Part shown: piece after piece, positions 1-56,059 of the stretch
Layout: the number at the start of each line of letters is the position of its first letter
How positions within the stretch are numbered: the first letter of the stretch is position 1
Assembly (NCBI GenBank): GCA_002269645.1
Contig: NIVC01001490.1
Span: 1 to 56,059 of the forward strand
Length of the DNA: 56,059 nt
Direction of reading: 5' to 3'
Source: Macrostomum lignano
Lineage: Eukaryota
The notes under the pieces: model-generated
What the model was told of the DNA's origin: nothing
The model's database searches: none
The model's input: the letters and a program-made list of their open reading frames with translations, nothing else
Position numbers and translations under genes: made by a program

Positions 1-118
1 CATCTATAGATCTTTGAAAATAGGAATTCTTTCAAAATGATACTCATTTCATGCTAAGGTGATTCTTTAGATTTGATCTCTCCAAAGCCTTTCCATCTTA
101 CACCTCTCCAATATATTG

Positions 119-3100
119 AAATTGTGTACAAAACAAGGAATCTGCTACAACAGAAGTGTTCACATGTCTTGGGACGACTGCAATTACATGAACAGCCCGT
201 GTGAAAATGACACCAGCACCAGCACTGATCCTTTGATCCGATGCTATACCGGATACCACATGTGTCTAAGACAGACACAGTGCGATGAAGTGGAGGCAAA
301 GAGGTCGTGTCCCAACAACAAGATTATCATCACGTCCGTGTCGCCAACAAACTCCTGCTTCATTCCTCTGCGTCTGAATATTCGCTTTATCGTCGTGCAG
401 CAAGTGGGTCCTCCAGTGATGAGAATCGGATCCAACAGGCTCGACAACAGCCGCATCGGACAGGAAATTGCACTCGACAGGCTTCTCGATAACAACAGCT
501 GCGTGAGCGCAGACGCACTGGGAATGTCCAACTATGCCGGCTCCAATGCGAGTCTATCGTGGGTAAAGCTGAGGTTTCGCTACTTCAACAAGGACAACAA
601 GGTAGTCGCCGAGTGTCAGCCTACCTACGGATTTCTGCTTCCGCCGAAGTCGCGACCGCCACCAGCTAGATTCCCGACAGTCGTGGTAGAAAAGAACGGC
701 ACTGGATACATGTATGACTATGTCTACCCAAATAATATTTTAGGTCCAGTATTGAACCAGTCTACAGCATCTGCCCCGTGGTGCGACAGTCTCGGTCTGT
801 CCGAGTTTCCCGAATCCGCTCCCAACGACTACATTCGTCAGCTGTGTCGAGAGGCACCGAGGAAGGCTGCCTACTGCTACATCGAGGCGTCGTCGCTCTA
901 CACCGAATATTCGTTTCACGCCTACTCCTACTATGGCAGTGCTCCTGTCAGAAAGTTTGACCCAGGATACATATCGCTTTCTGTTGACAGCTCATACTTT
1001 AATGTGCAACTCAGGCAGCCGGGCAGTGTGAATTTGACATGCAGACTGTGGAACGGACTGCTGCCGGAGCAGGACACGCCTCCGACTGACGGAAACTACT
1101 TTGGCGACGAGATTCTCCGAATTCAGTATTCGTCCATCTGCTATCCTGGATATGTTCCCTGTTTGGCTTCAAAGACTTGTATTCCTTCTGATAATTTGTG
1201 CGAAGCGCCGACAATTTATCCTCGTACAACAATCGGTCCAGAAACTACAACTGATCAGATTACTACAGAGAAGCCTAAGGATTGCCGATACAAAGTGGGT
1301 ACAAGCAACTTTATGATTTATTCGAGTCGCTCCAACTTCATGAAACCCATTGCTGTCGTTTTGCACAGGTTTCCTGCCCACCCAGCGGTCAACTACTCTG
1401 CAAGGCTGCTTGTGTGCTGTCTCTTGTCGATCAGGGTACACGGTGCAACGCACAGGGCAAGGTAGGTATCAAGATGGCTATTTTTTAGCTTTTTAGCTTT
1501 TTTAGCTTATTTTTCTCGACAATACGAGCTACGCTCGTACATGCAATTTTAGTCAAGGAAAATGCTGTTCGTTTCAGAGATTCTGCCAATCCAAAGGTGT
1601 CTGTGAGAATGCTACAGCTGAGTCAAGCTTCTGTGCGTCTCTGCCTCAAAATTTCACGATATGCGAGGGCGCCAATGAGGTAAGCAACAGAATGCATTCT
1701 ACTGAATGCCTACTAAATTTTTGAGTTACATTCGTAGCAGGTATAAAAGCTCATTGTTTGTATTGCTAATGCGCGGTGACAAGATTGCTTCATTCAAAAT
1801 GCTCATCCTTAGACTGCCTGTCCTCACGCATTCGGTGCCTGCTTGGACTTCGCCAATTGCCGTCAATTGTGTCCTCGCTCTCATCGGCTTTTGCCAGCTG
1901 CTCAGCTCGTTTCTGGCTTCAAGGGCTTGTACAGGGATGCTCCGGACCCCGGCGTCTGTCGCACAGGTCACCTTCTTGGCGCTGCGTCTGCCGCACGCAT
2001 CAAAGTAATTTTTGTTAGCCCGGCATCCGGTACTGAGATGGAGTTGGATGGTCGCAAAATCAATGTCAGCGGAAGTCCAGAGCCGATCAGACCCGACAGT
2101 TGCTTCCAGCTTCTCGTCCACGGCGCTCAGAATGTACTCATCAATCTCACGTACTCGCTGCTACTTCCAGACGGATCGGAATGCGTTATGAGAAGCTTCG
2201 TGCTCCTACCTCAGAGAGCTCTACCTCCCAATGTGACACTGATTAAATCTAGTCTCAGCGTCATGGACACCTCTGTGCTGGATGAGTCTCTCTCTACAGT
2301 GCTGGTGTTGAGTCCAAACGGTTTCCCGAACAGCAGCGTGTGCGATCTAAGACTTGACAACGTAATTGATCTGCACTACGAGAGAAGTGTCTGCAACATG
2401 CGCTCAAGGATTGAGTCCTCGACTGTCGGTGGCGTGTTCTGCAAGTACATGGTGCAGCCGGTGTGGTAAGTTACTCCTGCTACTAACGTAGAGGCGGCAC
2501 ATTGCTGCCAGAACAATGTAAGAAATGTAAGAATAACGGAAGAGTTAATAAAATTTTCGGTTTTAATACCTAAAATAATAGAATAAATTGAGAATAATTA
2601 ATATATCATGCGAATTGCTGCTGCTTCCGTAATGACTGCAATACTCTCGTGCTTCAGTATATACATACATATAGTGTTAATGTAATTTGTGTAACTTCCA
2701 GGCCTGACATCTACGGAAACCTGACGTTCCGAAGTGGAGTCACGACAAGCGGTATCATCGAGTACATGAGAGGCTTTCTCGTTCCGAGTCCAAGCCAAGC
2801 CCACATCCGATTCGAACCAAATCGCAATGCCGCTACCAAGACCTTCGTTCTGATGTGCCAGGCTTGGAGTGGAATGCCGCCTCGCTTCGGCTACACCAGC
2901 TCTGGTTCCCTTGTTCCATCCGTCCTTCCTTCAACAGCCATGGGTGGGACAGTCAAAGTTACAATCAGCGTGCTGCACAAGGAGCAGCCTCCTGTTGTGA
3001 ATAAAGATTTCTTCTCTTTTGGTGTTCTCAAGGACAGGGAGAACGAGTACGTGAGTCAGAAATTACAGCGAGAGCGAGGCTTCATGCTGCAACGGCATGG

Positions 3101-6100
3101 AGAAAACTACGTCACTCAGATTCGGGTCGGCGACATGGTTTCACTGTTCTTTTGTGACGATAATACATTCGAGTTGGGCGCTCTCGTTCTACAAGGCCTC
3201 GGCGACGATGCAAGTGGTGTTCTGGAGTACCAGCTGCCGAACTCCATGTTCTGGCAGACTCTGAATGTATCCGCTGACAAGCCTGCGTTTGAGCAGTATC
3301 GCATGCGCTCGCGTTTTAAGGACTCAGCAAAAACTTCGGATGCCTTTTCAACCATCCAGTGTTTGGGAAGCATCTCATCTACATCTTCCTCCATGCTGCA
3401 GCTCTCTGACTTCCTAGCAGATGGCGTCAACGGTACGGGGCCTGTCACTGCGATGTTCCTCCCGGCCAACGCTACGATCCGATTTCGGCCTACGGCCCCG
3501 GCGTCCTGGTCCCGCAGTCGCGCCATCCTTGCTTTTACAGCCGCAGAGAAGCTGGACGCCCAACAACAAGTCTACATCAATCCAGTCGTGGTCAGTAGCG
3601 TAGTCAACAAAAGTGCAGCTGCTGGATGGGCAGTTGTCCGTCCAGTGACGGTTGGCTGCGACAATCAGCCGTGGTCAGGTCTCCAGACTGATGTCTGTAA
3701 TATCTGTGGTGGAAATGGTCGCTCATGCATCGACTGCAACGGTGATGCAAATGGCACAGCGATCTGGAACGACTGTGGCAACTGCGTTGGTGGAAGAACT
3801 GGCAAAGCCATGCGTTATGGAAAGGATTGCGCTGGTCGATGCAACGGATCCTTTGTCTCACCAATGCCTGGCCTGTGCTACAATTCCAGTCGATTTGCGA
3901 CTGCTGATGAGTACATTCGATCGGTGTGGTGCGATGGTAAAGTGAACAGCACTGCACGCATCAATAAGTGCGGCTTCTGCACCGAGGGAAGCACCGGAAG
4001 AGCGGCCAACTTCGGCGTAGGACCCTGCGGCTGCAGCAACGACACTTCCTGTATCATAGGCTGTGACGGTGTCGCTGAGCCATCGGTGTCGTCCCGAAAG
4101 ACTCTTGACAAATGCGGTCGTTGTCTGCTGCCCAGCGACCCGCAGAGAGATATCTGTGCTCGGATCCACTTCACGATTACCCGAAACGCTTGCGTGGGGT
4201 CATACGCTGATTATCAGCAAGTGACAATCAGCAGCAGCAGCATCAACCTCACAATCAGCTCAATCACTCTGCGCCTGCTGAAAGTGACCGATCGGGTAAG
4301 ACATCAATTCCATTTTTGCAATAATAAAACTAAAGGCTCTTTTACTTACACCGCTATCAAATTGCACGAATGTAAATTACACGACGATGTAAAACGCGGC
4401 GAAAAAAATAGTACAAGACGTTTATCCTGATAGTGACGAATAATGGCCTAATTTAGTGGCAACGCGCCTAAAGGTTTACTTACACTGATTGTAGATGTAG
4501 GTGAAAATAAGCAAAATAGACCATAACTCCTGAATTACTCAACATTTTAAAGCTTCAGTTTCTAAGTGTGCAATTTACGTTGATAAAATACAAACTAATT
4601 TCTCCGCCCTCACATTGACAGTCGCTCTACACGGAGCTTCAAGCAATATCCATCGATGTATCTTCTGGTCTGTTCCGCTTTTCTGTGCCCTCGGGTCTCG
4701 TTGCTCGCGAGTACGCTCTACAGGTGAAATACTTGACCGCTTCCGGTGCTACAGTCATCGAGGACGTTTCCGGTGGAAACTTGACTGTTTTTGGAGCTCC
4801 CAGCTTGTCCAGCTTGAGTGTCGGGAGCGGACTCACGCTAGAAAATCCCGTTTACTCTCTGCCAGTGAGCGGACAGGGATTCGTCAACACGCCCGATCTC
4901 GTCTGCCTTCTCTACTGCGACGATCTTAGCCGCCACACCCGATGCGACCCGCGCACTGGCTTTCTCACTGTGCCGGCCAGATTCGACAGCGCGACAAGCG
5001 TCACCTGCAATATCTCTGCGCTGGCCGAAGTCCGACAGCCGCTACAATGGAAGCTCAGCGTCATGAACTGCAAGCCGCAAACACTCAGCTACGATGCATA
5101 TGCGGTGTTCAAGTGAGTGGTTTGTTTTTATTGCTGCAAGTATGAATGCAATGATTTACACCAAGTGACACATCGATTACACCTCTTGCAATCACCGACC
5201 AGACACAACTCGCTGCCGTTCTCGATCCGCTCGAGTAAGGGTCCGGTGCTGCTCTCAGCAACTGATGACGCCATTGGCTACCACCTGCGTCTCGAGTTTG
5301 ACACAAACATCCAGCTGCGACAGACGGCGTGCTCGGCCATCTTTGATGCGTCGACTTTTGCGCTCATGGGTTCAGGCCCAAAGTGCTACGCGAGGGCAAA
5401 CGCTCTCATCGTGTGGAAAGGTCGTGGCGCAACAATCTGCTCTGGCTCGCGAATCAGCATCAATTCGAATATCATTTATGTGGGTGGCAGCGACATCAGT
5501 CTGGCCACCAGTTCCAGTGTCAGCACCGCTGTTGTGAATGCAAACGGTCGGAAGCCACCTGTCATCTTTTTGGCCGGAGTCCAATCAGATGCCAACCAGG
5601 TGGCCACCGTCGGACTCTGTGATTCGTTCACCCTGTATGCCATCATCAGTGGATCGATGGTGCAGCAGATCACTTGGGACATCCGGTGTGCTGCAGGCTC
5701 AACCTGTCAAGCAACTGAGCTGGCTGCATTCCAGTCGAAGTTTTCCACAGAAGTCACTTTCTACGCCGGAAAGGATGTTAGTGATCTCAAGCGCTTAAGT
5801 CAGAAGATATTACTCAAAAAATCATAAAGCTTACAGTCTCAAATCTTTGCTTTCTTCTTCAGATTCCGCCTGGCGAGTCATACAACATCACGGCTTCTGC
5901 CCAGAACGAATGCGGAACACAGTCAAATACGGCGAGCATCGTAGTAAAACGACTCGTTGAACGAACGCCATTCAGCATTAGTATCTACGGACCGCAAAAG
6001 TATGTGAAGCCCGATCTGTGGTACAGCGCTGTGCTTATTGTCCGACCTTCATTTTGCTATACCAAGGCTATCGACACTCTGAGTGTAAGTAACAGTACTC

Positions 6101-9100
6101 TGAGAACGCTTATAGAATAAATCATGCAGCAAAATGTGATAATAGCAGCAAAATTTGCATCAAAATCTTGATGAGCATATCCCTAAATTGTCTTTTTATC
6201 GAATATAAAGTACACCTGTTGTCTGCTATACAATAAAATACCTACACTGCCATCAACGTGATTCTCCACACTTTACTTTTGCAGTACAAGTGGAAGATCG
6301 TCGGTGGCACCAAAGCCATCAATGTGGACCAACAGGCGATCACAGGGAAATTCTTCCGACTGAGATCTGGAGTCCTGCAAGGAGGCCAGACCTACAACCT
6401 GAGTGTCTGCGCTTCCATGCCGACTTGGCCCAACGTGGCGTGCGGCTTTTTGCTTCTGGAGACGATCAGCCGCCCTCTGTTTCTCATGTTCGTCCGCGGA
6501 GGTCGCTCTGATCTCGGCGTCAGCGATGCACTGCAGGAATCCGTGTACATCATCGATCCGGACTACTCGACTGAGACGACATTATGCACCTTTTATCTGA
6601 CCAAATGGGCCAACGGTGAGGCAGTCTACATGCGCAACATGCACACTGGGACCATGCTGTCCTCATTCAGCTTCTTCGGTTCGGATGGAACTCAGACATC
6701 ATCGAACAGTATCCAAGTTCCTTGGCCGGACCCCAGCGTATACGAGCTACCCTCAGGCTTCATGAACCTTACCGTCAGTTGTCAGCGGGGTCAGCGAAGG
6801 TCCAGTCGTACAAAGCTTGTGCAGATTTTGCCTCGTCCACCTCCATCAGTTCGGATCTTGACCGAGCCGAGCAACAAACCAATCAATCCAAACGCTGCTG
6901 TCCCGGTGACAGCTTTAGTGATTGCCAGTGAGATAACCCAGATTCAATGGTCTGTGGATACTCAAGAGACTGGCTTTGGCTCGCTGTCGCTTCAGCAGTG
7001 CTCAGTAGGACCGCCGCTGGCCGATACATGCGTACCCAATCGTCGCTGCTTCATTACTTTGGTTCTCAAGCCAGGACGGAGCTGCAGATTTGCTGCCGGA
7101 GTCTCCTACCGACTGCTTTTGATCGCCAGCGCCAGTTCCGGGACCGCTCAGGCCCAGTTCGACTTCCGCGTGAATGCGCCACCAAGTGGTGGAGCACTGT
7201 CTGTGACTCCCAGCCAAGGAGCCGCTCTGGAGACCTCCTTCACGCTCACCATATGGCCGAATATCACTGACGATTCCGACGTGTCCTTCAGTTACAGCGC
7301 CATGTGCTGTCGCCAAGATTCATCAAGCCAGTGCGTCAGCGTAACTAGTGAACCAACGCCCGCTAGACTGCTCACCACTCGTCTACCTGGAGGAAACTGG
7401 ATCTGCAAAGCTTCAGCCATCGACTCTAACGGAGCAGGCTCCGATTGGTTCTCATTTACTACTGTAATTCAGGTGCAAGCGAAGCAGCTAACGCTTGCCA
7501 AGCTCGACGATTTACTAAACAACTTGAACAATATTTCAAACAGCTGTGAGCGTGATCAAATTATTTCCATTTTTACTTCAATTTCATCAAAATTAAATAT
7601 TAACTTGCATCGATTTCATATCTTGAATTATAGTTGACACTCCAGCACTATGCGGAATGATCCTGAGTGAGCCAGATACTGGCCTGTCAACTGAGGTAAA
7701 GAACAAGAAGCATGAGCTGGTGCAGGAACTGGCGATTCGGGATCTTCTGAATTTAGACACAAGGTATAAGTCGTGCTAAATAGTAATATACTTATAAACA
7801 GAAAACCAATCTGTCAATAGTGTGGAAAAACTCAAGGGCAGTATTATATTCAAACTTTATCGATAATTTTAGTGTGCCATCGGTTTCCTGTCTCAGGGCT
7901 GCAACAAGCTGTCAACTGTTTCGGAAAACGAAAGCCAACAGCCAGTACATAACAAACTTGGTACTGAGCACTCTTAAAAAGTGCCTTGATGCGTTTCACT
8001 CTCAGTCCTTTTCAACAACTTTGCCAAACAGCGCAAGAAGAAGGAGAAGGCGCAACACGTCGGGATCTCAGGGTGGAACAACAAGCAAAATAACTGCCAC
8101 TGAAGCGAAGTCCGTCCTCGACATCGCGTCCGGAGTCTATCACTCCACACTCGATTCGACGACAGCTGCTGATATCCAGGCTACAATTCTTAACACCGTT
8201 CCTGCCTTCTGCAACAGTCAAAATCCGAACTCGCTAGCTCAGGCGGCAGCGTCTACAATGGCTGTTGTACGCGTGTACAAGACGTCTTTCAACTCAGTCG
8301 GTTCAGCCAATCTGGAGATGGGATGCGACTCAGGAAGCACCGACTGTCTATCCAATTTCACAGTCCGTCAACAGGTTGCACTTGGAGACGATCTCGAGCA
8401 GCGCTACTATAACTGGTCATGTGGCCAGACTGACTGCTTCCAGGACGGTGCCTGCATCGGAACCATCCTGCTGGACAAGGATCTGCTCACTCCACAGGCC
8501 AAAGTGGCTTCTCCGACGATTTCTCCGCGACGCAGTCCTCTGGCCTACGTAGGAATATTTCACCCGAGCGACGGCGCGAACCAGAATGTTTCACGCCTCG
8601 GTGATGGCGTGACTATCACCACCAACATCAGTGGCTCTGTGAATCTTAGTAGCATCAGTCTCATCTGCCGCAGCTGGAGCGGAGCTGACTGGACCCCGGA
8701 TAACTGCACAACTCGCGCGCCATTCCAGACCGACGATGGCATCTGGCACGTAACGTGTGTGTGCCGTGACATATCTTCATTTATTGGCGTTTTTGAGGGA
8801 CCACCAGGCTTCCGACCGGAGACAACCATCGCTCCATCTACCACCGAAAGTGAGACTGGCCAAGCAAGGACGACGTTTGAAACAACATTTGAATCTCACT
8901 TAATGACTACAATTTTGAAGATGCATACCTCATCTGTGCCTCTTTCGAGTACCATCACTTCTACTCAGGCTCCCAGTAGTACGTCTGCGACACTTTCGAA
9001 AGCGTCGAGTTTGTCTAGCACTTCTCAGAGTACAATCATTTCTACTCAGGAACCCACTAGTACATCTGCGACACTTTCGAAAGCGCCGAGTTTGTCTAGC

Positions 9101-10180
9101 ACTTCTCAGAGTACCATCACTTCTACTCAGAAACTCACTAGTACGTCGGCGACACTCTCAGAGACGCAAACTTCAGCTGCAACGCTTTGGAACAGCATCA
9201 CGACAACTATATTACCCCGTGTAACGGCTCCGACACTCTCAGAGACGGACACTATAGCTGTGACACTCCAAATCAGGGTCACAGAGTCATTCTCTAACGT
9301 CGTTACAGACGAAAGCCGCCTTCAAGGCCACCTGACGAGTCAGCTTGCGCGTCAGCTAAGGCTCGCTGAGTCGCAACTAACCGACATGCAGTTTGCAAAT
9401 GGCAGCGTTCTTATCAGTTTTACCGTCAACAGTCAGTCTGGTGCCAACACTAGTGCTTCCTTCGCTGTTTATTTGCTGGTGCAGCTCATGAACAACCGCC
9501 AGCTCGTGCTACTTGGCCTGAGCAACAGCAGTCTGACGGTCTCCTGGGAGTACCTGCGGGTGCTGGACGTAAAAACAGCTATGCAGCCTACTGTAAGGAC
9601 TAGCAGCAACAACACCAACATTATTTCCATCGCTGTTGGTGCTTCAGTTGGTGCCCTTTGCCTAATTGGGACTTTTATAGTAGTCCTTCTGCTAATGCGA
9701 AGGAGCAACCGAAACTCTAAAGTCCCAGAAGAACATGAGAGCAACTTAAGGAATGATTTGAATACGGTGCGTGACCCGAGAGCAACGGAGACAAGTTGGC
9801 CGGTCGGTGTCATTCCAGTCAAGTTTGCACCACCCCGTTGGAAAACGGTAAGGAGCTCTTTCGGTGGGCTACATTTTTTGTTTGCGTGCGAAGCTGTACG
9901 TAGTAGGCACTTTATTGCACACACTGTTCTATAGGGTTTGGTCTTCATATTAAAAACTATGCGACTCAATCACAAATGAACGTGTACTCGCTCACAAGTA
10001 AAAAAGATTACTTAGCGATATTTGTTCTGAGAAATTGATTTTAGTATTTTTCATTACTTGCATTAACGCGCACCCGTGTCCTTCCTACGACAGGAAATGC
10101 TCAGGGAGACGGGTCCATCGCAAAGTCGAGAGTCGAGAGCTGAGCGAGTGAGGGAATGGAGCAACCTGAAATACTATTAA
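119..10180 (+). CDS. Copy A: large single-pass REJ/GAIN(GPS)/SEA receptor (polycystin-1/REJ-like ectodomain), multi-exon, 5' end outside window
   Basis: Phase-consistent GT-AG exon chain built by hand: 119-1294, 1369-1461, 1578-1679, 1813-2465, 2702-4295, 4622-5112, 5203-5776, 5863-6084, 6285-7545, 7634-7763, 7873-9847, 10094-10180 (8358 nt, 2786 codons; first acceptor and last exon uncertain). Nine of the ten internal exons match copy B in length to within 1 nt; the stalk-containing exon differs (1975 vs 1655 nt). REJ hallmark, GPS motif, SEA motif and one hydrophobic helix are visible in translation. Confidence 0.85.
3651..4160 (+). CDS. Tandem Cys-rich modules resembling the ADAMTS Cys-rich GCDG...DxCGVCGG motif (within copy A)
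   Basis: VGCDNQPWSGLQTDVCNICGGNGRSC, DCNGDANGTAIWNDCGNCVGG, WCDGKVNSTARINKCGFCTEG, GCDGVAEPSVSSRKTLDKCGRC. Confidence 0.6.
6285..7545 (+). CDS. REJ-module exon of copy A
   Basis: YKWKI...LRSGVLQGGQTYNLSV and VNAPPSGGALSVTPSQGAALETSFTL (from 7170), matching the NxPPxGGxxxVxPxxGxALxTxF signature of REJ domains in PKD1-family proteins. Confidence 0.85.
7873..9847 (+). CDS. GAIN/GPS - Ser/Thr stalk - SEA - transmembrane exon of copy A
   Basis: Polybasic RRRRRR at 8036-8053; GPS CRSWSGADWTPDNC...CVCRDISSF at 8666-8782; S/T-rich 8820-9240; SEA-like with FANGSVLISF (GSV 9401-9409); TM IISIAVGASVGALCLIGTFIVVLLLM at 9620-9697 followed by RR. Confidence 0.85.
8951..9172 (+). repeat. 81-bp coding tandem repeat (~2.7 copies) forming the mucin-like stalk of copy A
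   Basis: Units start at 8951, 9032 and 9113 (TITSTQAPSSTSATLSKASSLSSTSQS-like); absent from copy B. Confidence 0.85.
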
Positions 10181-11836: not shown

Positions 11837-12046
11837 TGGCGTCCCTGGCACTGGCGTCCCTGGCACTGGCGTCCCTGGCACTGGCGTCCCTGGCACTGGC
11901 GTCCCTGGCACTGGCGTCCCTGGCACTGGCGTCCCTGGCACTGGCGTCCCTGGCACTGGCGTCCCTGGCACTGGCGTCCCTGGCACTGGCGTCCCTGGCA
12001 CTGGCGTCCCTGGCACTGGCGTCCCTGGCACTGGCGTCCCTGGCAC
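11837..12046. repeat. 15-bp minisatellite (TGGCGTCCCTGGCAC) x14
   Basis: Perfect tandem units read directly; ends ~280 bp upstream of the ATG at 12323. Confidence 0.97.
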
Positions 12047-12183
12047 TGGTGCCCCTTCATGGTAGCTAGTCAGATAAAATGGCGCCAATTCAAATGAGAT
12101 AGCGAATTTTTGCACAACTCAATTCATTACGCGTCTAGTTCTGTCTCCGCATGAAACTGAAGCTACAGGGAATAAGTTGCGGA

Positions 12184-12266: not shown

Positions 12267-12322
12267 AGGGGCAATAAGACGCTCCATCAGGCATTCGTTC
12301 GATACGGTTGACTTGCAACACA

Positions 12323-15300
12323 ATGCTTTTTATTGTTGCAAAGTGTTTGTCTAGTCTGGCACTTGCAGTCGTCTTCACTGCATCCTTCTGCCAGGATGTA
12401 CAGGGCTCACCAACAAGTTCCCACCTGAGTACGGTGGACTACAATGGCTTTGAATACACCTTCAATCTGGAGGAGTTCGCTGGCACAGACATGGACTATC
12501 TAGAACAGAGACAGGCGTGTTTTACCAAAGAGATGAACGGGTTGAAACCGTTTCGCATAGCTGACAGCGCCGAGTTCCTGGCACCCCTGATTCGGCTGGT
12601 CTCCGTCAAGTGAGTGGCCCTTCTCTGTTCCTATCATTAGTATATTTTTGGGCTTTCTTTTCTCGAAGCGAATGGTGCCCCTGTTGTTGGCACTTAGTGC
12701 AGTCTGAAGTTCAAGTCTGTTTCATCGGCATGTCGACATGTGCCTGCATCATCTCAGACTCCGGTAGCCACTGGCCTTTGCCTAAGCAGAGCTCCCAAAC
12801 CTTCAAATATTCTTGTTCGAGAATGAGCGCAACAGAAGGCGTCCTCGAAGTTCGTGGTCTGTGTTCGAAGTGTTCTTCTGGCGCATTTTTTTACTTTAGA
12901 AATTTCTTCAATACCATAATACAGATATTGTATAACTAGGCTTACCTTGCGCAAAGCGTTTGTTATTTTGCAAGGCAGTGATTTTTTCAATTTCAACAGC
13001 ACTTCATTTGCGGTTTGGCTCTCTGGCGTAACCATGACAACGGATATCGAGCACAGGGCTCAGGCTCCGCACATTCCACTGCTGAACGGCAGCAGCCTCA
13101 GATGGGGCTTCACCGGTCAGCTCCTGAACGTTGGCTGGCTGAACGAGAACCTCACCAGCATTCCCTGGGCTGCCGAGGCCAATGCCTATGCGACTGGTGG
13201 TGGCGCGGGCAGCCTGGTGGCCATGCGGCTGCTTGCCTGCGGCGATTTCAACGGCACAGCAGGCGACAGCAGCGATGGCGGTGGCGGAAACTCCAGCTGC
13301 CAGTTCGAGTTCGTGCTGACCCGACACTGGGAGCTGGTGCATCCAATCTGCTGGACATCCACCGACTGCACGTGTAAGTCTTTCACTGATGATATTTTCT
13401 TACAGGCTTTTGTGCGACATTGTTGTACTCTTTAGGCTACTCAGGTAAGGCCTAACAGTGTACCCGGATATTCGATTCGAATCAGACGGAAGGAATGCTT
13501 TGTAGCTTTGAATAAATATTCTTGCTGCTATATTTAGACCAAAAGATATTGCTTTGATCATTCATTCGTGGGCTGAACATAACTTCATTGAAGAATTTCC
13601 TTAAATAAATTGCGGCAGTTATCCGTTCAGGACTCAATTAGTTGCTATGAAACGAGACTGAATAGAACATTCTCCTCGCCATGACGCACTGCAGCCAGTG
13701 AAAACCAGACCTGCGTGTCCAGCAGCTATCCGGGCGCACCAGCTGCCTGCCTCTGCCTTCGCCGCAGTCAGATTTCTATCGAAACTCTGCTTGATCAACT
13801 GCTGATCAGCTGCCTGTTGCCGAAATTGGATACGCCCGAGTTAGCGGACACCTTCGTGTGAGTTTGCTGGGCGAACCCACTGAAGAACGGGGTGTCGTGC
13901 GTCACAGTATGGCAACCTCAAATGTTAGAATTTGAGAACCGCAAGAGGACACTAGAGAGACTATAGAGGCTATTTGTTCTAAAAGCGTACTTCTCGATGG
14001 GTTTAAGGATAAGTACTTCTGTGAATCGTGATGCTGTTATCATAGAAATGGCTTCAAAGGTAAGTACAGTGAACAAAGAATAAAGTGTCAGCTTCAGATT
14101 CGCCCTTTTAGATGCTGGAATCGGGCGTGTTGCGCATACAAAACTCCTAGCAAAAAGATAGATTGTCTGATTGAGGTTTAATGAATTGTTTGCTCAGCTT
14201 ATTCTTCTATTTATGTTTCTAGAGTCTATGCAGGATCCAGGCCTGGAAAAGCCCAGCAACGATGGTCCATGACTTGTTATAAATTATTTGTTTATTCTTT
14301 AGCCTGAACTTAAAGAAATGATAAGTGGGGGAAATCACGCGCAAATTTCGAAAAAGGTTGGTTCATGACATTTCTTGAAGAAAAATTCGAAAATCTCCCC
14401 ATACCGGATTGAGGTCAGCTCAATGCTAAACGCGTCTCGACTCTCGCGTCTCGACCCCTCGTTCGATTCCGTCACGTGTCTTTTTTTTCACGTGTATTTT
14501 TGGCTTGTGCGCAAAAAATTGTCTGGAGTTGTGCAATTCAGCTCCATGAAGATCAACCCTCAAGGCACAGAGAGTGTACATGCCTGACGAATAGAAGGCA
14601 GGGCCGCTGTACATTCGGTGAGCGCTGGTTGTGGGACAATGTCACCAAAAGCGTTGCACCAGGGTACCCGGCACTCTTCTGCAGTTATTATTATTGTTAT
14701 CAATATCATTATGATCGATTGACACTCGTAATGACTTCAGATCCCTACTGAGCGAAGTGCCATCGGGTTACAGTGGTCACTTAGTTTCGATTCTGCTAAT
14801 TCAAAGCGACTTTCTGACAGTTCATGGAGGCGGCGATGTACAGTCCGCTGGCTACAAGGACATGCTGGAGTTCAACACAAGTCCAAGAAAACCCAAATAT
14901 TGGTTTGACGACTACCAGCTGGTGCAGAAGAGTGACGCAACCAAGGCCTATCGTCTCGTGTTCGCATACAACGTTAACGGAGTGCAGCTATCAAGGAGGC
15001 TGGTCACTGCTGGCGATGTAGCATTTTGCGTTGGTAAGCCTTCTTAGATCTGTTACAATTCTCGGAGTTCTTAATTTTACTGTTCTCCGGAACTTATTAG
15101 AAGATTAAGTTGCATATTACGCTCGTAGAAGCTGAAGAATCTTTTAATCCCATGTCGTGAATTTCAGCAAAGAGATGCGTACAGCCTCACAACGACTCTT
15201 ATTTGCTGGGTCGCGGCCTGGTGGCCTTAAACAGCTCGCACGACTCGCGCTATCTGGTTAATGCAGTGAGTCTCTGAATTAATGCCGAATAAATGCCGCA

Positions 15301-18300
15301 TTGCTTGTCTAAAATGAGCCGGGAGTTTTACTGCGATTTTCTTTTTCTGTTCTTTATGTTGTTTAAAATCGACAATAAAGTCATTCCAAAAGTACAGGCA
15401 ATTATTCAAGTATTGCATTTCACTTTAGCTGAGATTTTTTCGTCCCGTTGAAGCTTTTCATCCCTGTACACTCGTAGTGTAAAAAAACTATCTTCTTGTC
15501 CTTGCCGACATAAAAAACTTACAGACGATCCAAAATCCACTATTTTTTACATTCCAGAACTCCCAGTTGACATTCCTGTATACCTGCCAGACTGGCTATG
15601 AGTACACTTCCGCGGCGCAACGTTTTACGAACTTCACTCGCCGTTGCAATGCCGCGGGTTCTTGGCAACCGGTTGAATTTCCGATCTGCCTGCCAAAATC
15701 CTGCGCTTTCCCTGACAGCGTCCCGGATGGTGCGGTGCCGACGCTGCAGATGTCCAGCTATACACCCCAGGGAACGGTAGCTGTTCAGAGCTATTCTGAT
15801 CCACAGAGTCTGCTGGTTCCCTTCAAATCCAAGCTGCTGTTCAACTGCTCAGACTCTGGCAGGATTGGCTACATGCAGTGCGGCCATAACGCCATCTGGG
15901 ACGCCAGCGGGCTGAACTGTAGCTGTTCGAATTTCACTGTTTCCGAGGCCTCCTGCTGCATACCTGTGGTGCCGAATGCGATTCTCATCCAGCCCACTGG
16001 TCTCGGTGTCTCTGAGAAGCCTTTGAATTTTACGCATCAGTGCTTAGAAAACTACTCAAGTCCCTTGAACTCCAGCCTTACTGTCGCGTCTGGCACGTGC
16101 AACATTCTTGCAAACGGAAGCCAGGGGCAATGTCTCTGCGAAGCAGCAACGCTAGCTGGCGGATATCCGTTCAGCTGTGAGCCGAGCCCCTGCACTGAAC
16201 CGCCACCTCAAGTGAACAATTCCATGGCAACGGTGCTCTACGGGGACACCGCTAAGCCGCTGACGCTGCCGCATAACTCGGCCTTCCCTGTTGGTCAGGT
16301 TGTGCGATACGCGTGCGACATTGGCTACAAGCCGGTCAGGTTGGATAACGAAACAATTGTCGGGACATTCTTGGAGGCCACCTGCGAGATCGGCAACCGT
16401 TGGTCTCCGATCCGCTTTGAGTGCTCCTTAGTCACCTGTCCCGGGGTGAAGTCCTACTCATGGGTGGACTACTATAAAGTCTTACCTAACGTCACCGAAC
16501 AAAACTTTACAGCTTCAACAACCGAAACAAGCCAGGTACTTCCATACAAGACCCAGCTGCGGTGGTTTTGTCACGGAGATCACCTTAAAATTCCTGGCGC
16601 CTCCGATGAGCAAGAATGCACCAAGACTGGAGAATGGTCGTGGCTCGGCAAAGGCAAAAGAGCATTTTTCTGCGTCCGTAAGTTAAACAGTTTCTTTGAT
16701 CTTGTCACTTTACCACTATTATCACTGCTTAGTGACGTCAGTTTCTATCTGAATATTTCTTGGAAATTTTTATGATAATTTTTGAACTGGTGATGTTTTG
16801 AACTTTAATTTTAAACCCCAGCTTAAAAGGCAATAAATTTGTTACTACCTTCATAGGAGCTTGCAGCAACGCCGTCCTCAGAAACAGCATCTCTGGAGAC
16901 AACGGCTTGGTGCTTTTTTCTCCCTACTCAACCAATTTGCTGTCACATTGGTTCCGATTTCATTACCCAAACAACCATGCATCTCTGGTGTGCAACTGGA
17001 CTACCAGTTTGCTGCATGGAATTCCGATGTCTCCCAGCTTCGTCAGTTACAACTGGACAGTGAATTGCAATGTATATTCCAATAATGCCAACTGGACGAG
17101 TGACTTTGCACCGGACATGAACGGATTGCAACTCTGTCCGCAGCACAACTGTTCTAATTTAAGCATATTTGTTGAAAATGCCTCAATAACGAGTATCGGC
17201 AACCCGATGGAGATGTTCGTCACCGTCAGCTGCCTGCCCGGGCACACAATTCGAAGCCCGGTGGTGGCGAACAAGACAACCATTGCCTGCAACCGGACTT
17301 CCGGGAAGTGGAACGCCACTGCAATCTGCGAGCCAGTCACGTGCGACAATCTGCCTTTCAATGCATCAGTTTCCGGGTTGATGAACCTAACTGCACCTTT
17401 CCAACTCAGCCAGAAGGGTGAAATATTGCCAGTGCATTGGAATGCCACCGGGTTTTCACTCTACTCCAAGGTGCATTACCTATGCCAGATTCTGTCTGTT
17501 GTGAATGACAGCAACACGTGGAGGCCTTTTCAGTGCAGGATTGGACGTGATGGCCTCAGGGGTAGCTGGGAGGATGTGAACCCCTCGTCATCGTTCACTA
17601 CTCTGAGCTGTTCACGTGAGTATGTGTGCAGTAAGATTATCTTGGAACATCAGGTGAGGCAGAAAACACTCTATTCTTTCAGACTACTGCCGAATATCAG
17701 CTCTAACAAGTGTAGTCGGTCCAGGAAACGCAACCTTCCGTTCACTCATCACAAGTACAGGCTATGTCGAGGGCTCAGCCGAAGCCACAGTGCAGTGCTG
17801 GGCGGGAAACTACTTCACATTAGCTCGTGGGAAGTCATACAAGTCAGCTGGAACTGTCAATTGCAAAGAGGGCAGCTGGGACATAGAAGATGCTCGAAAA
17901 GCAAATGCTAGCGTCGAGCTCTGTCGCAAGCTGCCTTGCGAGCCGCTGACGAACTTGACGAACCTTGACCTGTTCAGTGTGACGTCAAGTGAAATCCTCA
18001 ATAAGGCGACACGCCACGAGCCGGGCGCGGAAGTGTTGCTGCAGTGCCACCCGATGTACTATTTCGAAGCGATCAATGAAACTAAAAAGACAGCAACCTG
18101 TCTGAACAACTCAGTCTGGAGTTTCGCCTCAAACTGCCAGGCCCAGCTGTGCCCGGGTCTGCCTCTGGCAAATGAAACTGAGGCAATCGCGGCTCGAGGT
18201 CTGGCGCCGCACTTTCCCAACAGTCTGGGCTCGGCCGAACCCAGCGCACTGTCCGGCCAGCCCCGGCTACTCTGGTTGGCTACGCGTGTCGAAGCAGCCT

Positions 18301-19898
18301 GCTGGCCCAGCTGGAGATTGAGTCAAACTCTGCGGCGCTGTTCAACTGCACGGACACAGCTGGCCCAGGCATAGCCGGTTGGTCCGGCTCCCTAGCCCGG
18401 AACTGGCAGGATATCATTTGTCCCGGTGAGACACCAGCAAGCTGTGTTCTTTCTGCAACATGGCTTGATAAATATGGCTTGCTTAGACTGAACACATTGG
18501 CCGATTATTCTTAGTCCGGATTTACAATCATCTGGCTTCGTAGATCTGGTTTTGGTGCGGTTCTGGTTTAGTCCGCTTGCAGTTAAGCTGCTCTTCCCTC
18601 TTTTGAGCGAAAACATTTTTCAGCAGTGGCGTAGCCAAGGGTTCGGCGGATCAATAAAGTTTTGAATTTAAACTTGTTAAAATTGTCAACAAAAAAGCCA
18701 GTAACGCTAAAATCTCGCTGGCGGCCCTAAATCGCTGCGGAAATATTTTGCTTAGTGATGACTCTTATGACTCTGGCTCGTGACCTCTCAGATGAAAATC
18801 CACTGTTTTTCAGACATAAATTTTCCGGTTTAGTATGCCTTTGTAAATAACAGCTTCAGAAAAACACATTGCACACCATTGTATTGCACGCAGTGGTAGC
18901 GTGGTGAGCGGTTACAAAATAAACAGATCCAGATACTGTGTCTCAGTTTCTCCCCCAGGGTAGTGCGTTACATGCTACTGTTGTACCATCGTGCCCTTTT
19001 TTTCTCGCGCCCTGCCCCACCCTTCCAGTGTTCTCGCATGTACTTACAAGCGTCAATATGGAATCGTATGATCTCCGTCATCCCCACATCTGGCCCCCTT
19101 AGCAGACAAGCAAAAACTGGCAAACGCACTTTGCAGAGCATTGCTCCAGCCAAATTCTGCTTGACGCTTTCCACAACGGCTCGGTGACTTTCGAGGCCGA
19201 AGTGTTCCAGGCGGCCAACTTGTCCCTGGTAGGCAACGGGTCTCTCGCAGCCGTGAACTGCAGCAGGTCTGGCTCTGGTGAGACCCAAGCGTACCTCCAC
19301 AGTGATAGCTGGGTCAACACTAGCGCCGAGTTCTCGTCCACGGCAGCAACGATGCGCTGTCTAAACGGCACCTGGCAGGTGCTTGATGCGTCCTCTCACA
19401 GCGGCAGCGAATCGAACCGCGTGCCCAGCTGCCAGGAGCTTCCGTGTCATCCGCTGTCCAACTTGACCATCGCCAGCGTCAACGGAATAGCCGACAACGG
19501 CAGCGCTCTGCTGGATCCGCTGTCGAAGTACGTGCGTCATGCAGTCGGCAGGCGAGTCGAGTTGCGCTGTCCGACAGGTTATCGATTCGCCAGCCTGGGC
19601 GCAGAGGCTGCGAGCGTGGTTTGCCTCAGCGGTCCGCAGTGGAGCTTTGCCGAGGACTGCCAGCAGTGGAACGGGACCGCTTCTGGTCAAGGTGGGTTCA
19701 GAGAGTCGCTTTCCCAAATGTCAGTATTTTTCTCAATATCACAAAATTATTGATACTTTTGTACTGTTTAACTCCTTTATATTTGTACTAGCGACGTCAG
19801 CTCCCTGTTGGGAAGGCAAGACAAAAATATTTTTGAGAAACTTCACACGTAAAAGCCTGCATGGCCCAGTCACTATCGCTGGTTTCGTGAAATTTTGA
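12323..19898 (+). CDS. Signal peptide + C-type-lectin-like region + ~13 sushi/CCP-like modules; heavily N-glycosylated; 3' end unresolved
   Basis: Exons: 12323-12609 (MLFIVAKCLSSLALAVVFTASFC signal), 12979-13373, 13695-13857, possible 14046-14059, 14821-15033, probable ~15167-15258, 15558-16677, 16857-17615, 17683-18425 (1-nt frameshift at ~18326), 19137-~19691, possible 19801-19898. Repeated C..P...Y/FxCxxGY...CxxxGxW...C pattern. No TM helix found. Confidence 0.75.
15558..16677 (+). CDS. Sushi-repeat exon (about 5 CCP-like modules)
   Basis: FLYTCQTGYEY...RCNAAGSWQPVEFPIC; VRYACDIGY...TCEIGNRWSPIRFEC; LRWFCHGD...CTKTGEWSW; donor GTAAGT at 16678. Confidence 0.85.
16857..19691 (+). CDS. Further sushi-repeat exons (16857-17615, 17683-18425, 19137-~19691)
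   Basis: All junctions are phase 1, as is typical for sushi exons; TVSCLPGH...CNRTSGKWNATAIC, LLQCHPMY...CLNNSVWSFASNC, ELRCPTGY...CLSGPQWSFAEDC. Confidence 0.8.
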
Positions 19899-21490: not shown

Positions 21491-22319
21491 GAGGTCCCGC
21501 ATGAGAACTGTGAACATAGTGACGTCATGCAAGAGAACTGGGCACATGTTGAGGTCACGCATGAGAACTGGGCACATGTTGAGGTCACGCATGAGAACTG
21601 GGCACACTGTGAGGTCGTGCATGAGAACTGGGCACACTGTGAGGTCGTGCATGAGAACTGGGCACACTGTGAGGTCGCGCATGAGAACTGGGCACACTGT
21701 GAGGTCGTGCATGAGAACTGGGCACACTGTGAGGTCGTGCATGAGAACTGGGCACACTGTGAGGTCGCGCATGAGAACTGGGCACACTGTGAGGTCGTGC
21801 ATGAGAACTGGGCACACTGTGAGGTCGTGCATGAGAACTGGGCACACTGTGAGGTCGTGCATGAGAACTGGGCACACTGTGAGGTCGCGCATGAGAACTG
21901 GGCACACTGTGAGGTCGTGCATGAGAACTGGGCACACTGTGAGGTCGTGCATGAGAACTGGGCACACTGTGAGGTCACGCATGAGAACTGGGCACACTGT
22001 GAGGTCGTGCATGAGAACTGGGCACACTGTGAGGTCACGCATGAGAACTGGGCACACTGTGAGGTCGCGCATGAGAACTGGGCACACTGTGAGGTCGTGC
22101 ATGAGAACTGGGCACACTGTGAGGTCGTGCATGAGAACTGGGCACACTGTGAGGTCACGCATGAGAACTGGGCACACTGTGAGGTCGTGCATGAGAACTG
22201 GGCACACTGTGAGGTCACGCATGAGAACTGGGCGCACTGTGAGGTCGTGCATGAGAACTGGGCACACTGTGAGGTCGCGCATGAGAACTGGGCACATGTT
22301 GAGGTCACGCATGAGAACT
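21491..22319. repeat. 30-bp minisatellite (GAGGTCGTGCATGAGAACTGGGCACACTGT) x~27
   Basis: Tandem units with GTCGTG/GTCGCG/GTCACG variants read directly. Confidence 0.97.
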
Positions 22320-23750: not shown

Positions 23751-26700
23751 CTGGAAATCAATTGCGGCTTGGGATGCTGATGGACACAGTGGGGATATTG
23801 GGGGCTGCTGATGGACACAGGGGGATATTGGGGGTTACTGATGGACACAGGGGGATTTTGGGGGTTACTGATGGACACAGGGGGATATTGGGGGTTACTG
23901 ATGGACACAGGGGGATATTGGGGGTTACTGATGGACACAGGGGGATTTTGGGGGTTACTGATGGACACAGGGGGATATTGGGGGTTACTGATGGACACAG
24001 GGGGATTTTGGGGGTTACTGATGGACACAGGGGGATATTGGGGGCTGCTGATGGACACAGGGGGATATCTAATCTTCTAATCTTCTAATCTTCTAATCTA
24101 ATCTAATTCTAATCTTCTAATCTTCTAATCTTCTAATCTTCTAATCTTCTAATCTTCTAATCTTCTAATCTTCTAATCTTCTAATCTTCTAATCTTCTAA
24201 TATATCTAAAGTAGCAACCCCCCCCTCCACCGGCCCTGTCTGTCTGTGGGTATGTAACAGGTTATCTCCCAAAAGGCTCAACCGATTTTCTCCGTTTCTT
24301 CGCCAAAAGATGTCAAATGTGCCCGGGACGGTACATGTAATTTTATTAAGCTCTAGCTCAATGCTAAGGGGATTAAATATTCGAAAAACTGTTTTAAATG
24401 GCCTTTTTAGTGTATTTTTTTATCAGCCTGCGCGCAGCGAGAAACTTCACAGCCAATTTTAATGATTGCGCCAGAGCCAACTGATAAGAAAATTCACTTT
24501 GCCCCACTGCCCAGATAATTACTCTATTTAACTTGCGTAACCAATTAAGGGGGGGTATAATGAAAATTCTGGATGCTTCCAATATACTAAAAAAAATATA
24601 CTAAAAATCAAAACTTCCATTCCAATATACTAAAAATCAAAACTATGTACCTATAGGAACCTTCGTGTAACTTGGCTCTACATGGTCGGAATTTCGCGGG
24701 GTTTTCTGCATTCGATGCGTATTGATGGCGCGCTGGTACACGAAATTTTGCTAAGAAATTGCTTCATTTTTTCGGGCTTAAATATTCGAAAAACTCGATT
24801 TTTGCCCCGCATTTTTAAGTTCAAACAGTTCTTTCCAATTGAGAAGCATTCTGACTGCCGATGGAATTGTATCGCATCATAACTCAGTGCCAACTATAGC
24901 ATTGGTTCTCTACACTGGCGTAGAGAGCTATAAGCGTTGAAAGGTTGCGCAACACCTTTTAGTTATTGAATTGAGGGGCGGGTATTGCCATTCAATGAGT
25001 CCCGGGCATTGGCTTGGTTGTGAATTTCAATGCATCAACTGCAGGCCTCTCACTGTAGCTGGCGCTGAATGTACACCTTTATGAATTTGACTGCTTTAAA
25101 GCAGGAATATCAAACCGTTGTTTGTGCTTCGAGTTTTTCACTTTCAGAAGAGAGCCTTGTATTGCTGGAAAGAGCTAGAAACGCTGAGTTCGAGAATATA
25201 ATCTGTTTGCTGAGATTTGAAAAATTAAAAGCACAGCATAAAAAAGAAATTTCTATACTTTTTACTCTATATTCTCATTGTACGCTCTCTCATATCGCAA
25301 ACCCCTATTTATCGCAACTCCACTATTCAAGCCAGCGCCATTAGATCTAAATTTAGATTGCGTAACCATATTGTTGACTTTAATTGTTGACTTTATTAAT
25401 TGAAACTGATATTGACTGCCTGAGAAATTGATTACGTCGTAACTGCTTCGAGTGATTTCTACTCTATGCTGGGAGTTTTCAAAGTGTTGAAATATATAAG
25501 TGCTACAATTCATGTTATCAAAACGATGAGAGCTAGCCTAGAGGTAAACAGACTGAACTGCTAATGCAGCGACGTGGGTTCGAATTTTTAGAGTGTTGAA
25601 GTTTTTTATTAAAAAAATTAATTTCAAGAAAGCTAAAGGAATCTTAAAAATGTCAAGTAAATCAGGTAAAAGAGAAGAAGCTACGAGCGTTCATGTAGTA
25701 TAATCAAAAATTTTATTCAACTTTAAATTTTGAAAAGTTTTAAAAAGGACTATTCCAATAGATAAGAAATTAATTATTGTAATAGCTGACGAAATTGTTT
25801 CACAATCTTGCTGGGGGTACTTTCTATCAGGGGATGCTTGCTATCGGAAGGACGCTTGCTTTTGGGAATGCTTGCTCGGGGGAGATTGCTAACTGGGGGA
25901 ATCACTGAGATGTCAAGGCTTAGTGGGGAAATTCCTGAGATGTCAAGTCTTAGAGGGGGGAGGGAATTGCTGAGATGTCAAGGCTTAGAGGGGGGAGGGA
26001 ATTGCTGAGATGTCAAGGCTTAGAGGGGGGAGGGAATTGCTGAGATGGCAAGGCTTAACAGGGACTTGCTGAGATGCCAAGGCTTGGTGGGGAAATTCCT
26101 GAGATGTCAAGTCTTGGTGGGGAAATTCCTGAGATGTCAAGTCTTGGGGGGGGGAGAATTGCTGAGATGCCAAGGCTAAAGAGGGACTTGCTGAGATGCC
26201 AAGGCTTAAGAGGGACTTGCTGAGATGTCAAGGCTTAAGAGGGACTTGCTGAGATGCCAAGGCTTAAGAGGGACTTGCTGAGATGCCAAGGCTTAAGAGG
26301 GACTTGCTGAGATGCCAAGGCTTAAGAGGGACTTGCTGAGATGCCAAGGCTTGGTGGGGAAATTCCTGAGATGTCAAGTTTTAGGGGGGGGGGGGAATTG
26401 CTGAGATGTCAAATGCTTAGAGGGACTTGCCGAGATGTCAAGACGTAAGACGGAATTGCTGAGATTTCAAGGCTTGGGGGGGAATTACTGAGATGCCAAG
26501 GCTTGAGGGCGAATTGCTGAGATGTGAAGGCTTGGGGGAATTTCCGAGATGTCAATGCTTGGTGGGGAAATTCCTGAGATGTCAAGTCTTAGAAGGGGGA
26601 AATCTGTGAGATATCAAGTCTCAGGGGGGAATTGCTGAGATGTGAAGGCTTGGGGGAATTTCTGAGATGTCAAAATCTTAGGGAAGGGAATTGCAGAGAT

Positions 26701-34900: not shown

Positions 34901-34989
34901 GCTTGGCAGAGCGCATGGCGCGAGATGCAGCAGGATTCAGCAGCTAAATCATACAGGCTACGGTAGAAGCGGAGAAAGAAATTCTGCGC

Positions 34990-55772: not shown

Positions 55773-56059
55773 CTGAATATTGGAGAGGTGAAGGATGGAA
55801 ATATTTTATACAAAGATCAAATCTGAGGAAGAAGCACGACGGAATGTCATGAGTGTGTCATTTCGAAAGAAGTCGAAAGTCTACACGTTCTGTCAATGCT
55901 GTTCTGACTGTAAGTCTTCAATTGTTTTTTTGCATTTTGGTGTACATATTACAAGCTTTTATTACAAGGCTAGAGGAGAGAGTGAGTTCACATTACGCTA
56001 CGCTCGTACTCGTAATAGCTTGCGAGTTTAATACTGACGAAATCATTGACATATTTTAT

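Follow-up and report, generated by a model that had tools for sequence, protein, structure and literature searches.

A REJ-domain protein of Macrostomum lignano with a GAIN-like region, a Ser/Thr-rich stalk and a SEA-like module before a single transmembrane helix

Two paralogous REJ-domain genes on one contig

We analysed contig NIVC01001490.1 of the Macrostomum lignano assembly GCA_002269645.1, whose entire length of 56,059 nucleotides is called the window hereafter. Two paralogous genes, copy 1 and copy 2, lie at its opposite ends in convergent orientation, and both are cut on their 5' side by the end of the contig. Copy 1 is the main subject of this work. Its domain order is a Cys-rich region, a REJ domain, a GAIN-like region with a GPS-like motif, a Ser/Thr-rich stalk, a SEA-like module, one transmembrane (TM) helix and a tail of 78 residues (Table 1). 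It is probably an intact gene, 5'-incomplete in the window, and its predicted product is a type-I glycoprotein of the cell surface, very large and crossing the membrane once. The outer part resembles that of polycystin-1, a kidney-disease protein, and the anchor resembles that of membrane mucins.

The body of copy 1 occupies positions 88-10180 of the + strand in 12 exons, while the tblastn and self-blastn matches span about 24-9752 (for copy 2, about 55874-45894 of the - strand). The junctions were inspected one by one, using as guides the sequences of three proteins: P0001 (BOX15_Mlig013328g1 of M. lignano) and P0002 (a second M. lignano REJ protein), both found by searching proteins with the translated sequence from REJ to tail, and P0004 (UniProt A0A1I8FVC6). 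The spliced model contains 2,795 amino acids with no internal stop, all its junctions are of the GT-AG type and its introns measure 74-326 nt. The part running from the GPS-like motif through the TM helix is encoded by a single uninterrupted exon, 7873-9847, so that no splicing is required between these elements. The last junction combines the donor ACG/GTAAGG (the slash marks the exon end) with a pyrimidine tract before the acceptor, and the terminal exon matches the tail of P0004 at 100% identity. Neither a start codon nor a signal peptide was found at the 5' end of copy 1 or copy 2, and P0004 carries one more repeat of the N-terminal module upstream of the point where copy 1 starts; the copy 1 gene therefore continues 5' beyond the contig. 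The initial annotation had placed the gene at 119-10180. Its end agrees with the stop codon, whereas the first exon in the window probably starts at 88 and the gene extends further upstream. The predicted ectodomain comprises about 2,400 residues of Cys-containing folded regions, with 101 Cys.

Table 1. Positions of the features of copy 1, of copy 2 and of the gene that follows copy 1 in the window.
Feature	Position	Strand	Residues	Remarks
Copy 1, exons 1-6	88-1294, 1369-1461, 1578-1679, 1813-2465, 2702-4295, 4622-5112	+		
Copy 1, exons 7-12	5203-5776, 5863-6084, 6285-7545, 7634-7763, 7873-9847, 10094-10180	+		
Cys-rich region	3657-4166	+	1004-1173	repeated D-x-C-G-x-C-x-G-G; conserved in homologs
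REJ domain	6285-7544	+	1646-2065	Pfam PF02010
GAIN-like region	7464-8806	+	2039-2420	exons 9-11; helical part, then beta-rich part
Polybasic RRRRRR	8036-8053	+	2164-2169	candidate furin-type site
GPS-like motif	8666-8794	+	2374-2416	4 Cys and 2 Trp conserved
Ser/Thr-rich stalk	8795-9253	+	2417-2569	153 residues, 48% Ser+Thr
SEA-like module	9254-9577	+	2570-2677	GSVLISF at 9401-9421
TM helix	9620-9697	+	2692-2717	followed by RRSNRNSK
Cytoplasmic tail	9698-10180	+		78 residues: 9698-9847, 246-nt intron, 10094-10177, stop 10178-10180
Sushi/CCP-repeat gene, multi-exon	~12278-19750	+		signal-peptide-like start MLFIVAKCLSSLALAVVFTASFC; Pfam Sushi E=2.7e-9
Copy 2	45621-55874	-		inverted paralogous duplicate, same architecture, shorter stalk; tblastn and blastn

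A REJ domain followed by a GAIN-like region without the cleavage triad

The REJ domain was the sole above-threshold Pfam match of copy 1, both in the raw open stretches and in the spliced model. PF02010 matched the open stretch 6237-7634 with E=1.1e-19 and 70.9 bits (cut-off 25) and the spliced model with E=1.4e-19, the alignment spanning model positions 15-432 of 452. The same scan of the copy 1 model revealed no LRR, WSC, C-lectin, LDL-A or PKD repeats. The Cys-rich region gave no Pfam match and may represent an undescribed domain. Repeats of the types D-x-C-G-x-C-x-G-G and D-C-x-G are visible in the homologs from Potamilus, Dimorphilus, Branchiostoma, Rhopilema and Mizuhopecten.

The GPS-like motif reads CRSWSGADWTPDNCTT...CVCRDISSFIGVF, with the pattern CRSW...W...C...CVCRDISSFIGVF. 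Pfam GPS matched it in the spliced model with only E=1 (10.4 bits), yet the match spans positions 2-42 of the 45 of the Pfam model. A profile built from 17 family sequences matched the GAIN structures of seven adhesion G-protein-coupled receptors (GPCRs) with E values from 1e-3 to 3e-2, including ADGRG1 (9.9e-4), ADGRG6 (1.1e-3), ADGRB2 (1.4e-3), ADGRL3 (4.5e-3), ADGRG3 (4.7e-3) and ADGRF1 (0.018). These alignments cover the C-terminal strands and the GPS of the solved domains, and all of them reach the motif's end. The homologs from Bugula and Trinorchestia are independently labelled as GPS proteins by UniProt and NCBI. The top matches of the profile were the heavy-chain variable chains of anti-lysozyme antibodies; they align only over a C..W....W stretch (YYCANWDGDYW) and were discarded as chance matches. 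Searches of the Protein Data Bank (PDB) with single sequences of the GAIN-like and SEA-like segments gave nothing meaningful. In an AlphaFold2 model of the whole C-terminal module, obtained from a two-row alignment, the order of secondary-structure elements is GAIN-like at low confidence (predicted local distance difference test, pLDDT, 39), and the fold search with this model matched EpCAM and Trop2 only, through its SEA-like part.

The canonical GPS motif is given as H-x-S/T (PMC13062082). Copy 1 has D-I-S where H-L-T/S would be expected; most family members have x-L-G, the nucleophile position being mostly Gly across the family. Since its GPS lacks the catalytic His-x-Ser/Thr, GAIN cleavage in copy 1 is unlikely. 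In addition, about 275 residues, made up of the stalk and the SEA-like module, separate the motif from the TM helix. Upstream, a polybasic site of the form R-R-x-K/R-R is kept across the family about 200-240 residues before the GPS, with two Arg columns invariant in 12 aligned sequences, which suggests furin-type processing at this position.

A SEA-like module next to a single TM helix

The stalk contains a tandem repeat of 81 bp x 2.6 (27-residue units) at 8947-9156. With its 153 residues and 2.6 repeats it differs from the long tandem-repeat proline/threonine/serine-rich ectodomain of the MUC1 type. The segment that follows (residues 2559-2686) was modelled with AlphaFold2 from a 21-sequence alignment, giving a pLDDT of 88 and a predicted template-modelling score of 0.79. 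Along the segment, the elements are beta(11-23), alpha(31-45), beta(53-59), beta(62-70), alpha(79-91), beta(107-119). In the 21 sequences, invariance is confined to Gly61-Ser62 of the modelled segment (G2619-S2620), which lie in the beta2-beta3 hairpin; the Gly-Ser and the [IV][IV]V-x-F that follows it are invariant or nearly so in these sequences, which come from several phyla. The best Foldseek matches of the model were EpCAM (E=4.9e-4, template-modelling score 0.66-0.69), Trop2, dystroglycan (8e-3, a chain within the structure of the dystrophin-glycoprotein complex) and the membrane-proximal ectodomain of IA-2/phogrin (3e-2). EpCAM, Trop2, dystroglycan, IA-2, MUC1 and the heterodimerisation domain (HD) of Notch have been treated as one class of juxtamembrane SEA and SEA-like domains (PMC6586460). 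As modelled, the juxtamembrane module of copy 1 is thus SEA-like by its fold and its motif, and not SEA by sequence. The Pfam family FAZ1_cons (PF23398) gave sub-cut-off matches in 15 of the 21 SEA-like segments, from helix 1 to strand 3 (best E=1.5e-6).

Residues 2692-2717 form the sole strongly hydrophobic, above-threshold segment of the copy 1 model. There is consequently one TM helix and not the seven-transmembrane domain of an adhesion GPCR, and the stop 78 residues after this helix leaves a single-pass protein and not an 11-TM one. Pfam detected neither PLAT nor a PKD channel in the copy 1 model, in the open stretches of the + strand between 9.9 and 21 kb, or among the eight long models of homologs that were scanned. 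The next gene after copy 1 starts at about 12.3 kb; it is distinct from copy 1, codes for Sushi repeats and has a signal peptide of its own.

Most of what the initial annotation had noted at this locus was recovered: the REJ signature, the Ser/Thr stalk, the single helix with its short tail, the lack of a PLAT or multi-TM region, and the placement of the SEA-like part between the GAIN-like part and a single TM helix in a REJ protein, with all elements on the + strand within 119-10180. Other points needed to be narrowed. The GPS motif it named holds for the Cys/Trp scaffold and the profile matches to GAIN structures, and not for the Pfam model or the cleavage triad. The SEA-like domain with a GSV motif stood as a fold and as GSVLISF, not as a Pfam SEA domain or as a relative closest to the mucins; the structure prediction it had proposed gave the beta-alpha-beta-beta-alpha-beta order, with EpCAM and Trop2 nearest. 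The label "polycystin-1-type ectodomain" fits the tandem of REJ and GAIN-like regions, while the further polycystin-type domains searched with Pfam gave no match.

Comparison of the two copies

The database model P0001 (1,396 amino acids; 45790-50540, - strand) begins at an internal Met and covers only the 1,396 codons at the 3' end of copy 2. Since homology to P0002 runs upstream of this start to 55772, the annotated P0001 is truncated at its 5' end by about 1,300 codons. At the DNA level, identity between the copies is 88% in the 5' part, 96% at 1556-7763, 93.5% at 7867-8867 and 74% at 9215-9752, and the stalk of copy 2 is about 107 residues shorter than that of copy 1. Within the last large exon, synonymous divergence (dS) is 0.14 in the GAIN-like part, with a ratio of non-synonymous to synonymous divergence (dN/dS) of 0.24; in the SEA-like module dS is 0.85 and dN/dS 0.15, and in the tail dS is about 1.7. 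These values indicate that the SEA-like module is under purifying selection, and judging from their sequences both copies in the window look functional. The jump of dS from 0.14 to 0.85 inside one exon suggests either that the 5' and middle part underwent gene conversion or that the gene is of mosaic origin.

An old family of uncharacterised animal proteins

With the copy 2 module from the GAIN-like region through the TM helix as query, an exhaustive search by HMMER found 34 relatives (E<=1e-3). Many of them align over the GAIN-B part, the stalk, the SEA-like module and the TM helix at about 25-28% identity, and the match ends 30-200 residues before the C-terminus. They come from M. lignano, from four bivalves (Potamilus, Mactra, Mercenaria and Mizuhopecten), and from the annelid Dimorphilus, the bryozoan Bugula, krill, an amphipod, Limulus, amphioxus (Branchiostoma) and the jellyfish Rhopilema. 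No vertebrate, insect or nematode relative was among the matches of this search. Pfam REJ was detected in the homologs from Potamilus (3e-40), Branchiostoma (7e-54) and Rhopilema (6e-34). The long homolog models with a recognisable GPS have no H-L-S/T, and they have the GS[IV][IV]V-x-F motif and a single C-terminal TM helix. On this sequence evidence, the proteins form an old, uncharacterised invertebrate family present in at least seven phyla.

The module is therefore not a local, one-off graft, the initial annotation having spoken of an ectodomain grafted onto a mucin/SEA anchor. Its view that the architecture is undescribed agrees with a literature search covering part of the journals, which yielded no paper on the M. 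lignano gene identifiers or on a REJ+SEA or single-TM GAIN architecture. All relatives are named hypothetical or uncharacterised. The architecture is conserved and unstudied, though built from known parts.

Other contents of the contig

Satellite arrays occur at 11837-12049, 21491-22319, 23777-24068, 25895-26750 and 28587-29771. They comprise a perfect 15-bp x 14 array, 30-bp arrays and one 29-bp array; the 30-bp arrays at 23.8 kb and 28.6-29.8 kb belong to one family. The GC skew is very strong between 26 and 30 kb (+0.46 to +0.54). A long open stretch of the - strand at 28627-30207 matches the mannose-6-phosphate receptor family in its N-terminal part (Pfam E=3.4e-8), and its remainder crosses the 30-bp satellite. 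A tyrosine-recombinase mobile element with open reading frames on the - strand lies at 33584-36561, where the local GC content is 61%. It carries SAP (E=6e-10), phage-integrase SAM-like N-terminal and integrase catalytic (E=9e-6) domains, and is flanked by direct repeats of about 200 bp (33584-33783 and 36359-36561) that are 93.6% identical.

Proposed function and alternative explanations

We favour, with some confidence, a reading in which copy 1 encodes a REJ protein with a catalytically dead GAIN-like domain, a stalk and a self-cleaving SEA-like module, which together make a releasable single-pass tether. Because the triad is missing and the domain lies 150-300 residues from the bilayer, the GAIN-like domain could not supply a tethered agonist, and it would instead serve with REJ as a structural or adhesive module. 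SEA domains cleave in the beta2-beta3 hairpin, as is known for MUC1. A strictly conserved Gly-Ser hairpin in a membrane-adjacent SEA-like fold would best be explained by autoproteolysis of the SEA type: the module would cut itself between G2619 and S2620 during folding, as in MUC1 and dystroglycan, and the ectodomain would stay attached non-covalently and be releasable under load, as has been proposed for those two proteins. When pulled, or when reached by a sheddase, the ectodomain would be released, so that the protein would act as a releasable adhesion or load-bearing tether and not as the partner of a polycystin channel. The conserved polybasic site might allow a further furin-type cut inside the GAIN-like region.

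Several observations weigh against this reading. The architecture is read from the DNA, and the function is inferred from it throughout. The copy 1 model is a predicted transcript derived from genomic sequence, with an N-terminus that lies off the contig. The terminal exons of the two copies are homologous (10094-10180 and 45621-45668) yet are read in different frames: that of copy 1 reads EMLRETGPSQSRESRAERVREWSNLKYY in the P0004 model, the alternative frame of 10096-10140 reads NAQGDGSIAKSRVES, which resembles NTQGGGSIEMSRVEN of copy 2, and the donors upstream differ in phase between the copies. The 78-residue tail shows no recognised motif. Foldseek returned no GAIN match for the sole, low-confidence model that covers the putative GAIN fold. 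Pfam SEA (PF01390) matched neither copy and only one of 21 family members (E=0.038); the SEA-like family profile found no SEA chain and nothing significant among PDB sequences, and mucin SEA entries were absent from the top 50 Foldseek matches. Finally, SEA-like domains of the EpCAM, Trop2 and Notch type are cut by other proteases and not by themselves, so that the fold alone is no proof of autoproteolysis.

This last point leads to the main rival explanation, which we consider rather unlikely: the SEA-like module would not cleave itself and would act as a proteolytic switch of the Notch, EpCAM and dystroglycan type, hiding a sheddase site that force or a bound ligand would expose, or as a rigid juxtamembrane spacer. 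The nearest structures, EpCAM and Trop2, and the failure of Pfam SEA to match agree with it, as does the behaviour of SEA-like domains as proteolytic switches (PMC6586460). However, a mere spacer would hardly account for the strict conservation of Gly-Ser-[IV][IV]V-x-F at exactly the beta2-beta3 hairpin. It appears improbable that the protein is a receptor that recognises gametes or distinguishes self from non-self, as an analogy with sea urchin REJ1 and ascidian s-Themis would have it. In favour of this are the REJ domain, the hermaphroditism of M. lignano and the fast divergence of stalk and tail between the paralogs; sea urchin REJ proteins act in the recognition of egg jelly by sperm (PMC2120838, PMC1934368). 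On the other hand, Pfam detected in copy 1 no C-lectin or EGF domain, which are the recognition-type domains in REJ1. Selection on the GAIN-like and SEA-like parts is purifying and not positive, and the family has been kept across phyla of very different reproductive biology.

It is very improbable that copy 1 is a polycystin-1-like gene of the ordinary kind and that its PLAT and 11-TM exons escaped detection, being alternatively spliced or located elsewhere. Such exons would be anticipated from the usual continuation of PKD1-family proteins into PLAT and multi-TM regions (PMC1934368). Nevertheless, a single open exon holds the sequence from the GPS to most of the tail, the short terminal exon after it ends in a stop, no PLAT or PKD-channel match lies on the + strand between 9.9 and 21 kb, where the Sushi-repeat gene begins, and the homolog models from other phyla, including NCBI XP_ models, end in the same way. 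We give equally little credence to the idea that the locus is a pseudogene, or that it arose through misassembly, for instance as a palindromic chimeric contig. The inverted arrangement of two 5'-cut copies at the two ends of the contig, together with their discordant tail frames, could point to an artefact, but the copies are 4-26% apart in DNA and their stalks are unequal in length, so that they are not one sequence read twice. As to a pseudogene, reading frames are open over about 2,800 codons in both copies, and dN/dS is 0.15-0.24 in the folded domains.

GAIN and SEA are the two known self-cleaving modules that couple animal adhesion to force-dependent release or signalling. The present family joins a GAIN and a SEA-like module in one chain, in the reverse of the order found in adhesion GPCRs, single-pass and without a channel or GPCR part; its GAIN appears dead while the SEA-like cleavage motif is strictly conserved. 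Tentatively, the family could even constitute a third ancient class of animal GAIN surface proteins, to be added to those of the adhesion GPCR and polycystin-1-like types, in which the SEA-like module takes over force-sensitive cleavage from a non-autoproteolytic GAIN and which was retained from cnidarians to amphioxus. Nature would then have exchanged one of the two known autoproteolytic mechanosensing modules for the other. Confirmation would make the REJ-GAIN tandem of polycystin-1 a portable ectodomain cassette, predating or apart from the body associated with the 11-TM channel, would provide a natural test case for the role of a non-cleaving GAIN, and would define a widespread invertebrate surface family almost unannotated in current domain databases. 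M. lignano is amenable to RNA interference and transgenesis, so the function is testable.

Comparison with known systems

The PKD1/REJ family is defined by possession of a REJ domain (Gunaratne et al. 2007, PMC1934368), and by this loose rule alone the predicted copy 1 protein would be a member. PKD1-family proteins normally continue from the GPS into TM, PLAT and multi-TM regions, and SpREJ proteins have 1-11 TM segments, with no SEA domain in the list of their domains (PMC1934368). SpREJ1 has been reported as single-pass without PLAT (PMC2120838, PMC1934368), and a coral REJ protein is a classical multi-pass one (PMC4890752). Copy 1 resembles polycystin-1 and the SpREJ proteins in its very large, putatively glycosylated ectodomain and in the REJ domain placed directly before a GAIN-like domain with a GPS-type Cys/Trp end. 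It differs from them in having no PLAT, no 11-TM or channel region and no H-L-T/S, in the lack of detectable LRR, WSC, C-lectin and PKD repeats, and in a GPS that is not next to the TM helix, being set off from the membrane by the mucin-like stalk and the SEA-like module.

Some adhesion GPCRs (ADGRF1, ADGRF5 and ADGRG6) carry a SEA domain N-terminal to the GAIN domain. Copy 1 shares with this class a GAIN/GPS-type domain combined with adhesion modules, and the presence of SEA-type and GAIN-type parts in one polypeptide. In contrast, it has no seven-transmembrane domain, its order is reversed (GAIN, SEA-like, TM) and the GPS triad is absent, so that the tethered-agonist logic of adhesion GPCRs does not apply. 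Single-TM isoforms bearing a GAIN domain do exist, for example of Drosophila CIRL (bioRxiv 10.1101/2023.01.11.521585).

KIAA1549 is a type-I, heavily O-glycosylated, Ser/Thr-rich protein with juxtamembrane SEA-like domains, furin-type processing and one TM helix (PMC13570299). Copy 1 has in common with it a Ser/Thr-rich region, a juxtamembrane SEA-like module and a single TM helix, together with a candidate furin-type site, whereas KIAA1549 itself has neither REJ nor GAIN. A relationship between the two was rejected, given that there was no sequence match and no match to Pfam KIAA1549. With MUC1, dystroglycan, EpCAM/Trop2, IA-2 and the Notch HD, copy 1 shares an extracellular alpha/beta sandwich that adjoins a single TM helix, and a Ser/Thr-rich stalk before this sandwich. 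With MUC1 and dystroglycan it shares in addition G-S-[IV]-[IV]-V in the beta2-beta3 hairpin, as at their cleavage sites. Compared with these SEA and SEA-like proteins, the copy 1 module does not match Pfam SEA and its cleavage is putative, and its N-terminal partner is a REJ-GAIN ectodomain in place of mucin repeats, a cadherin-like domain or a thyroglobulin domain.

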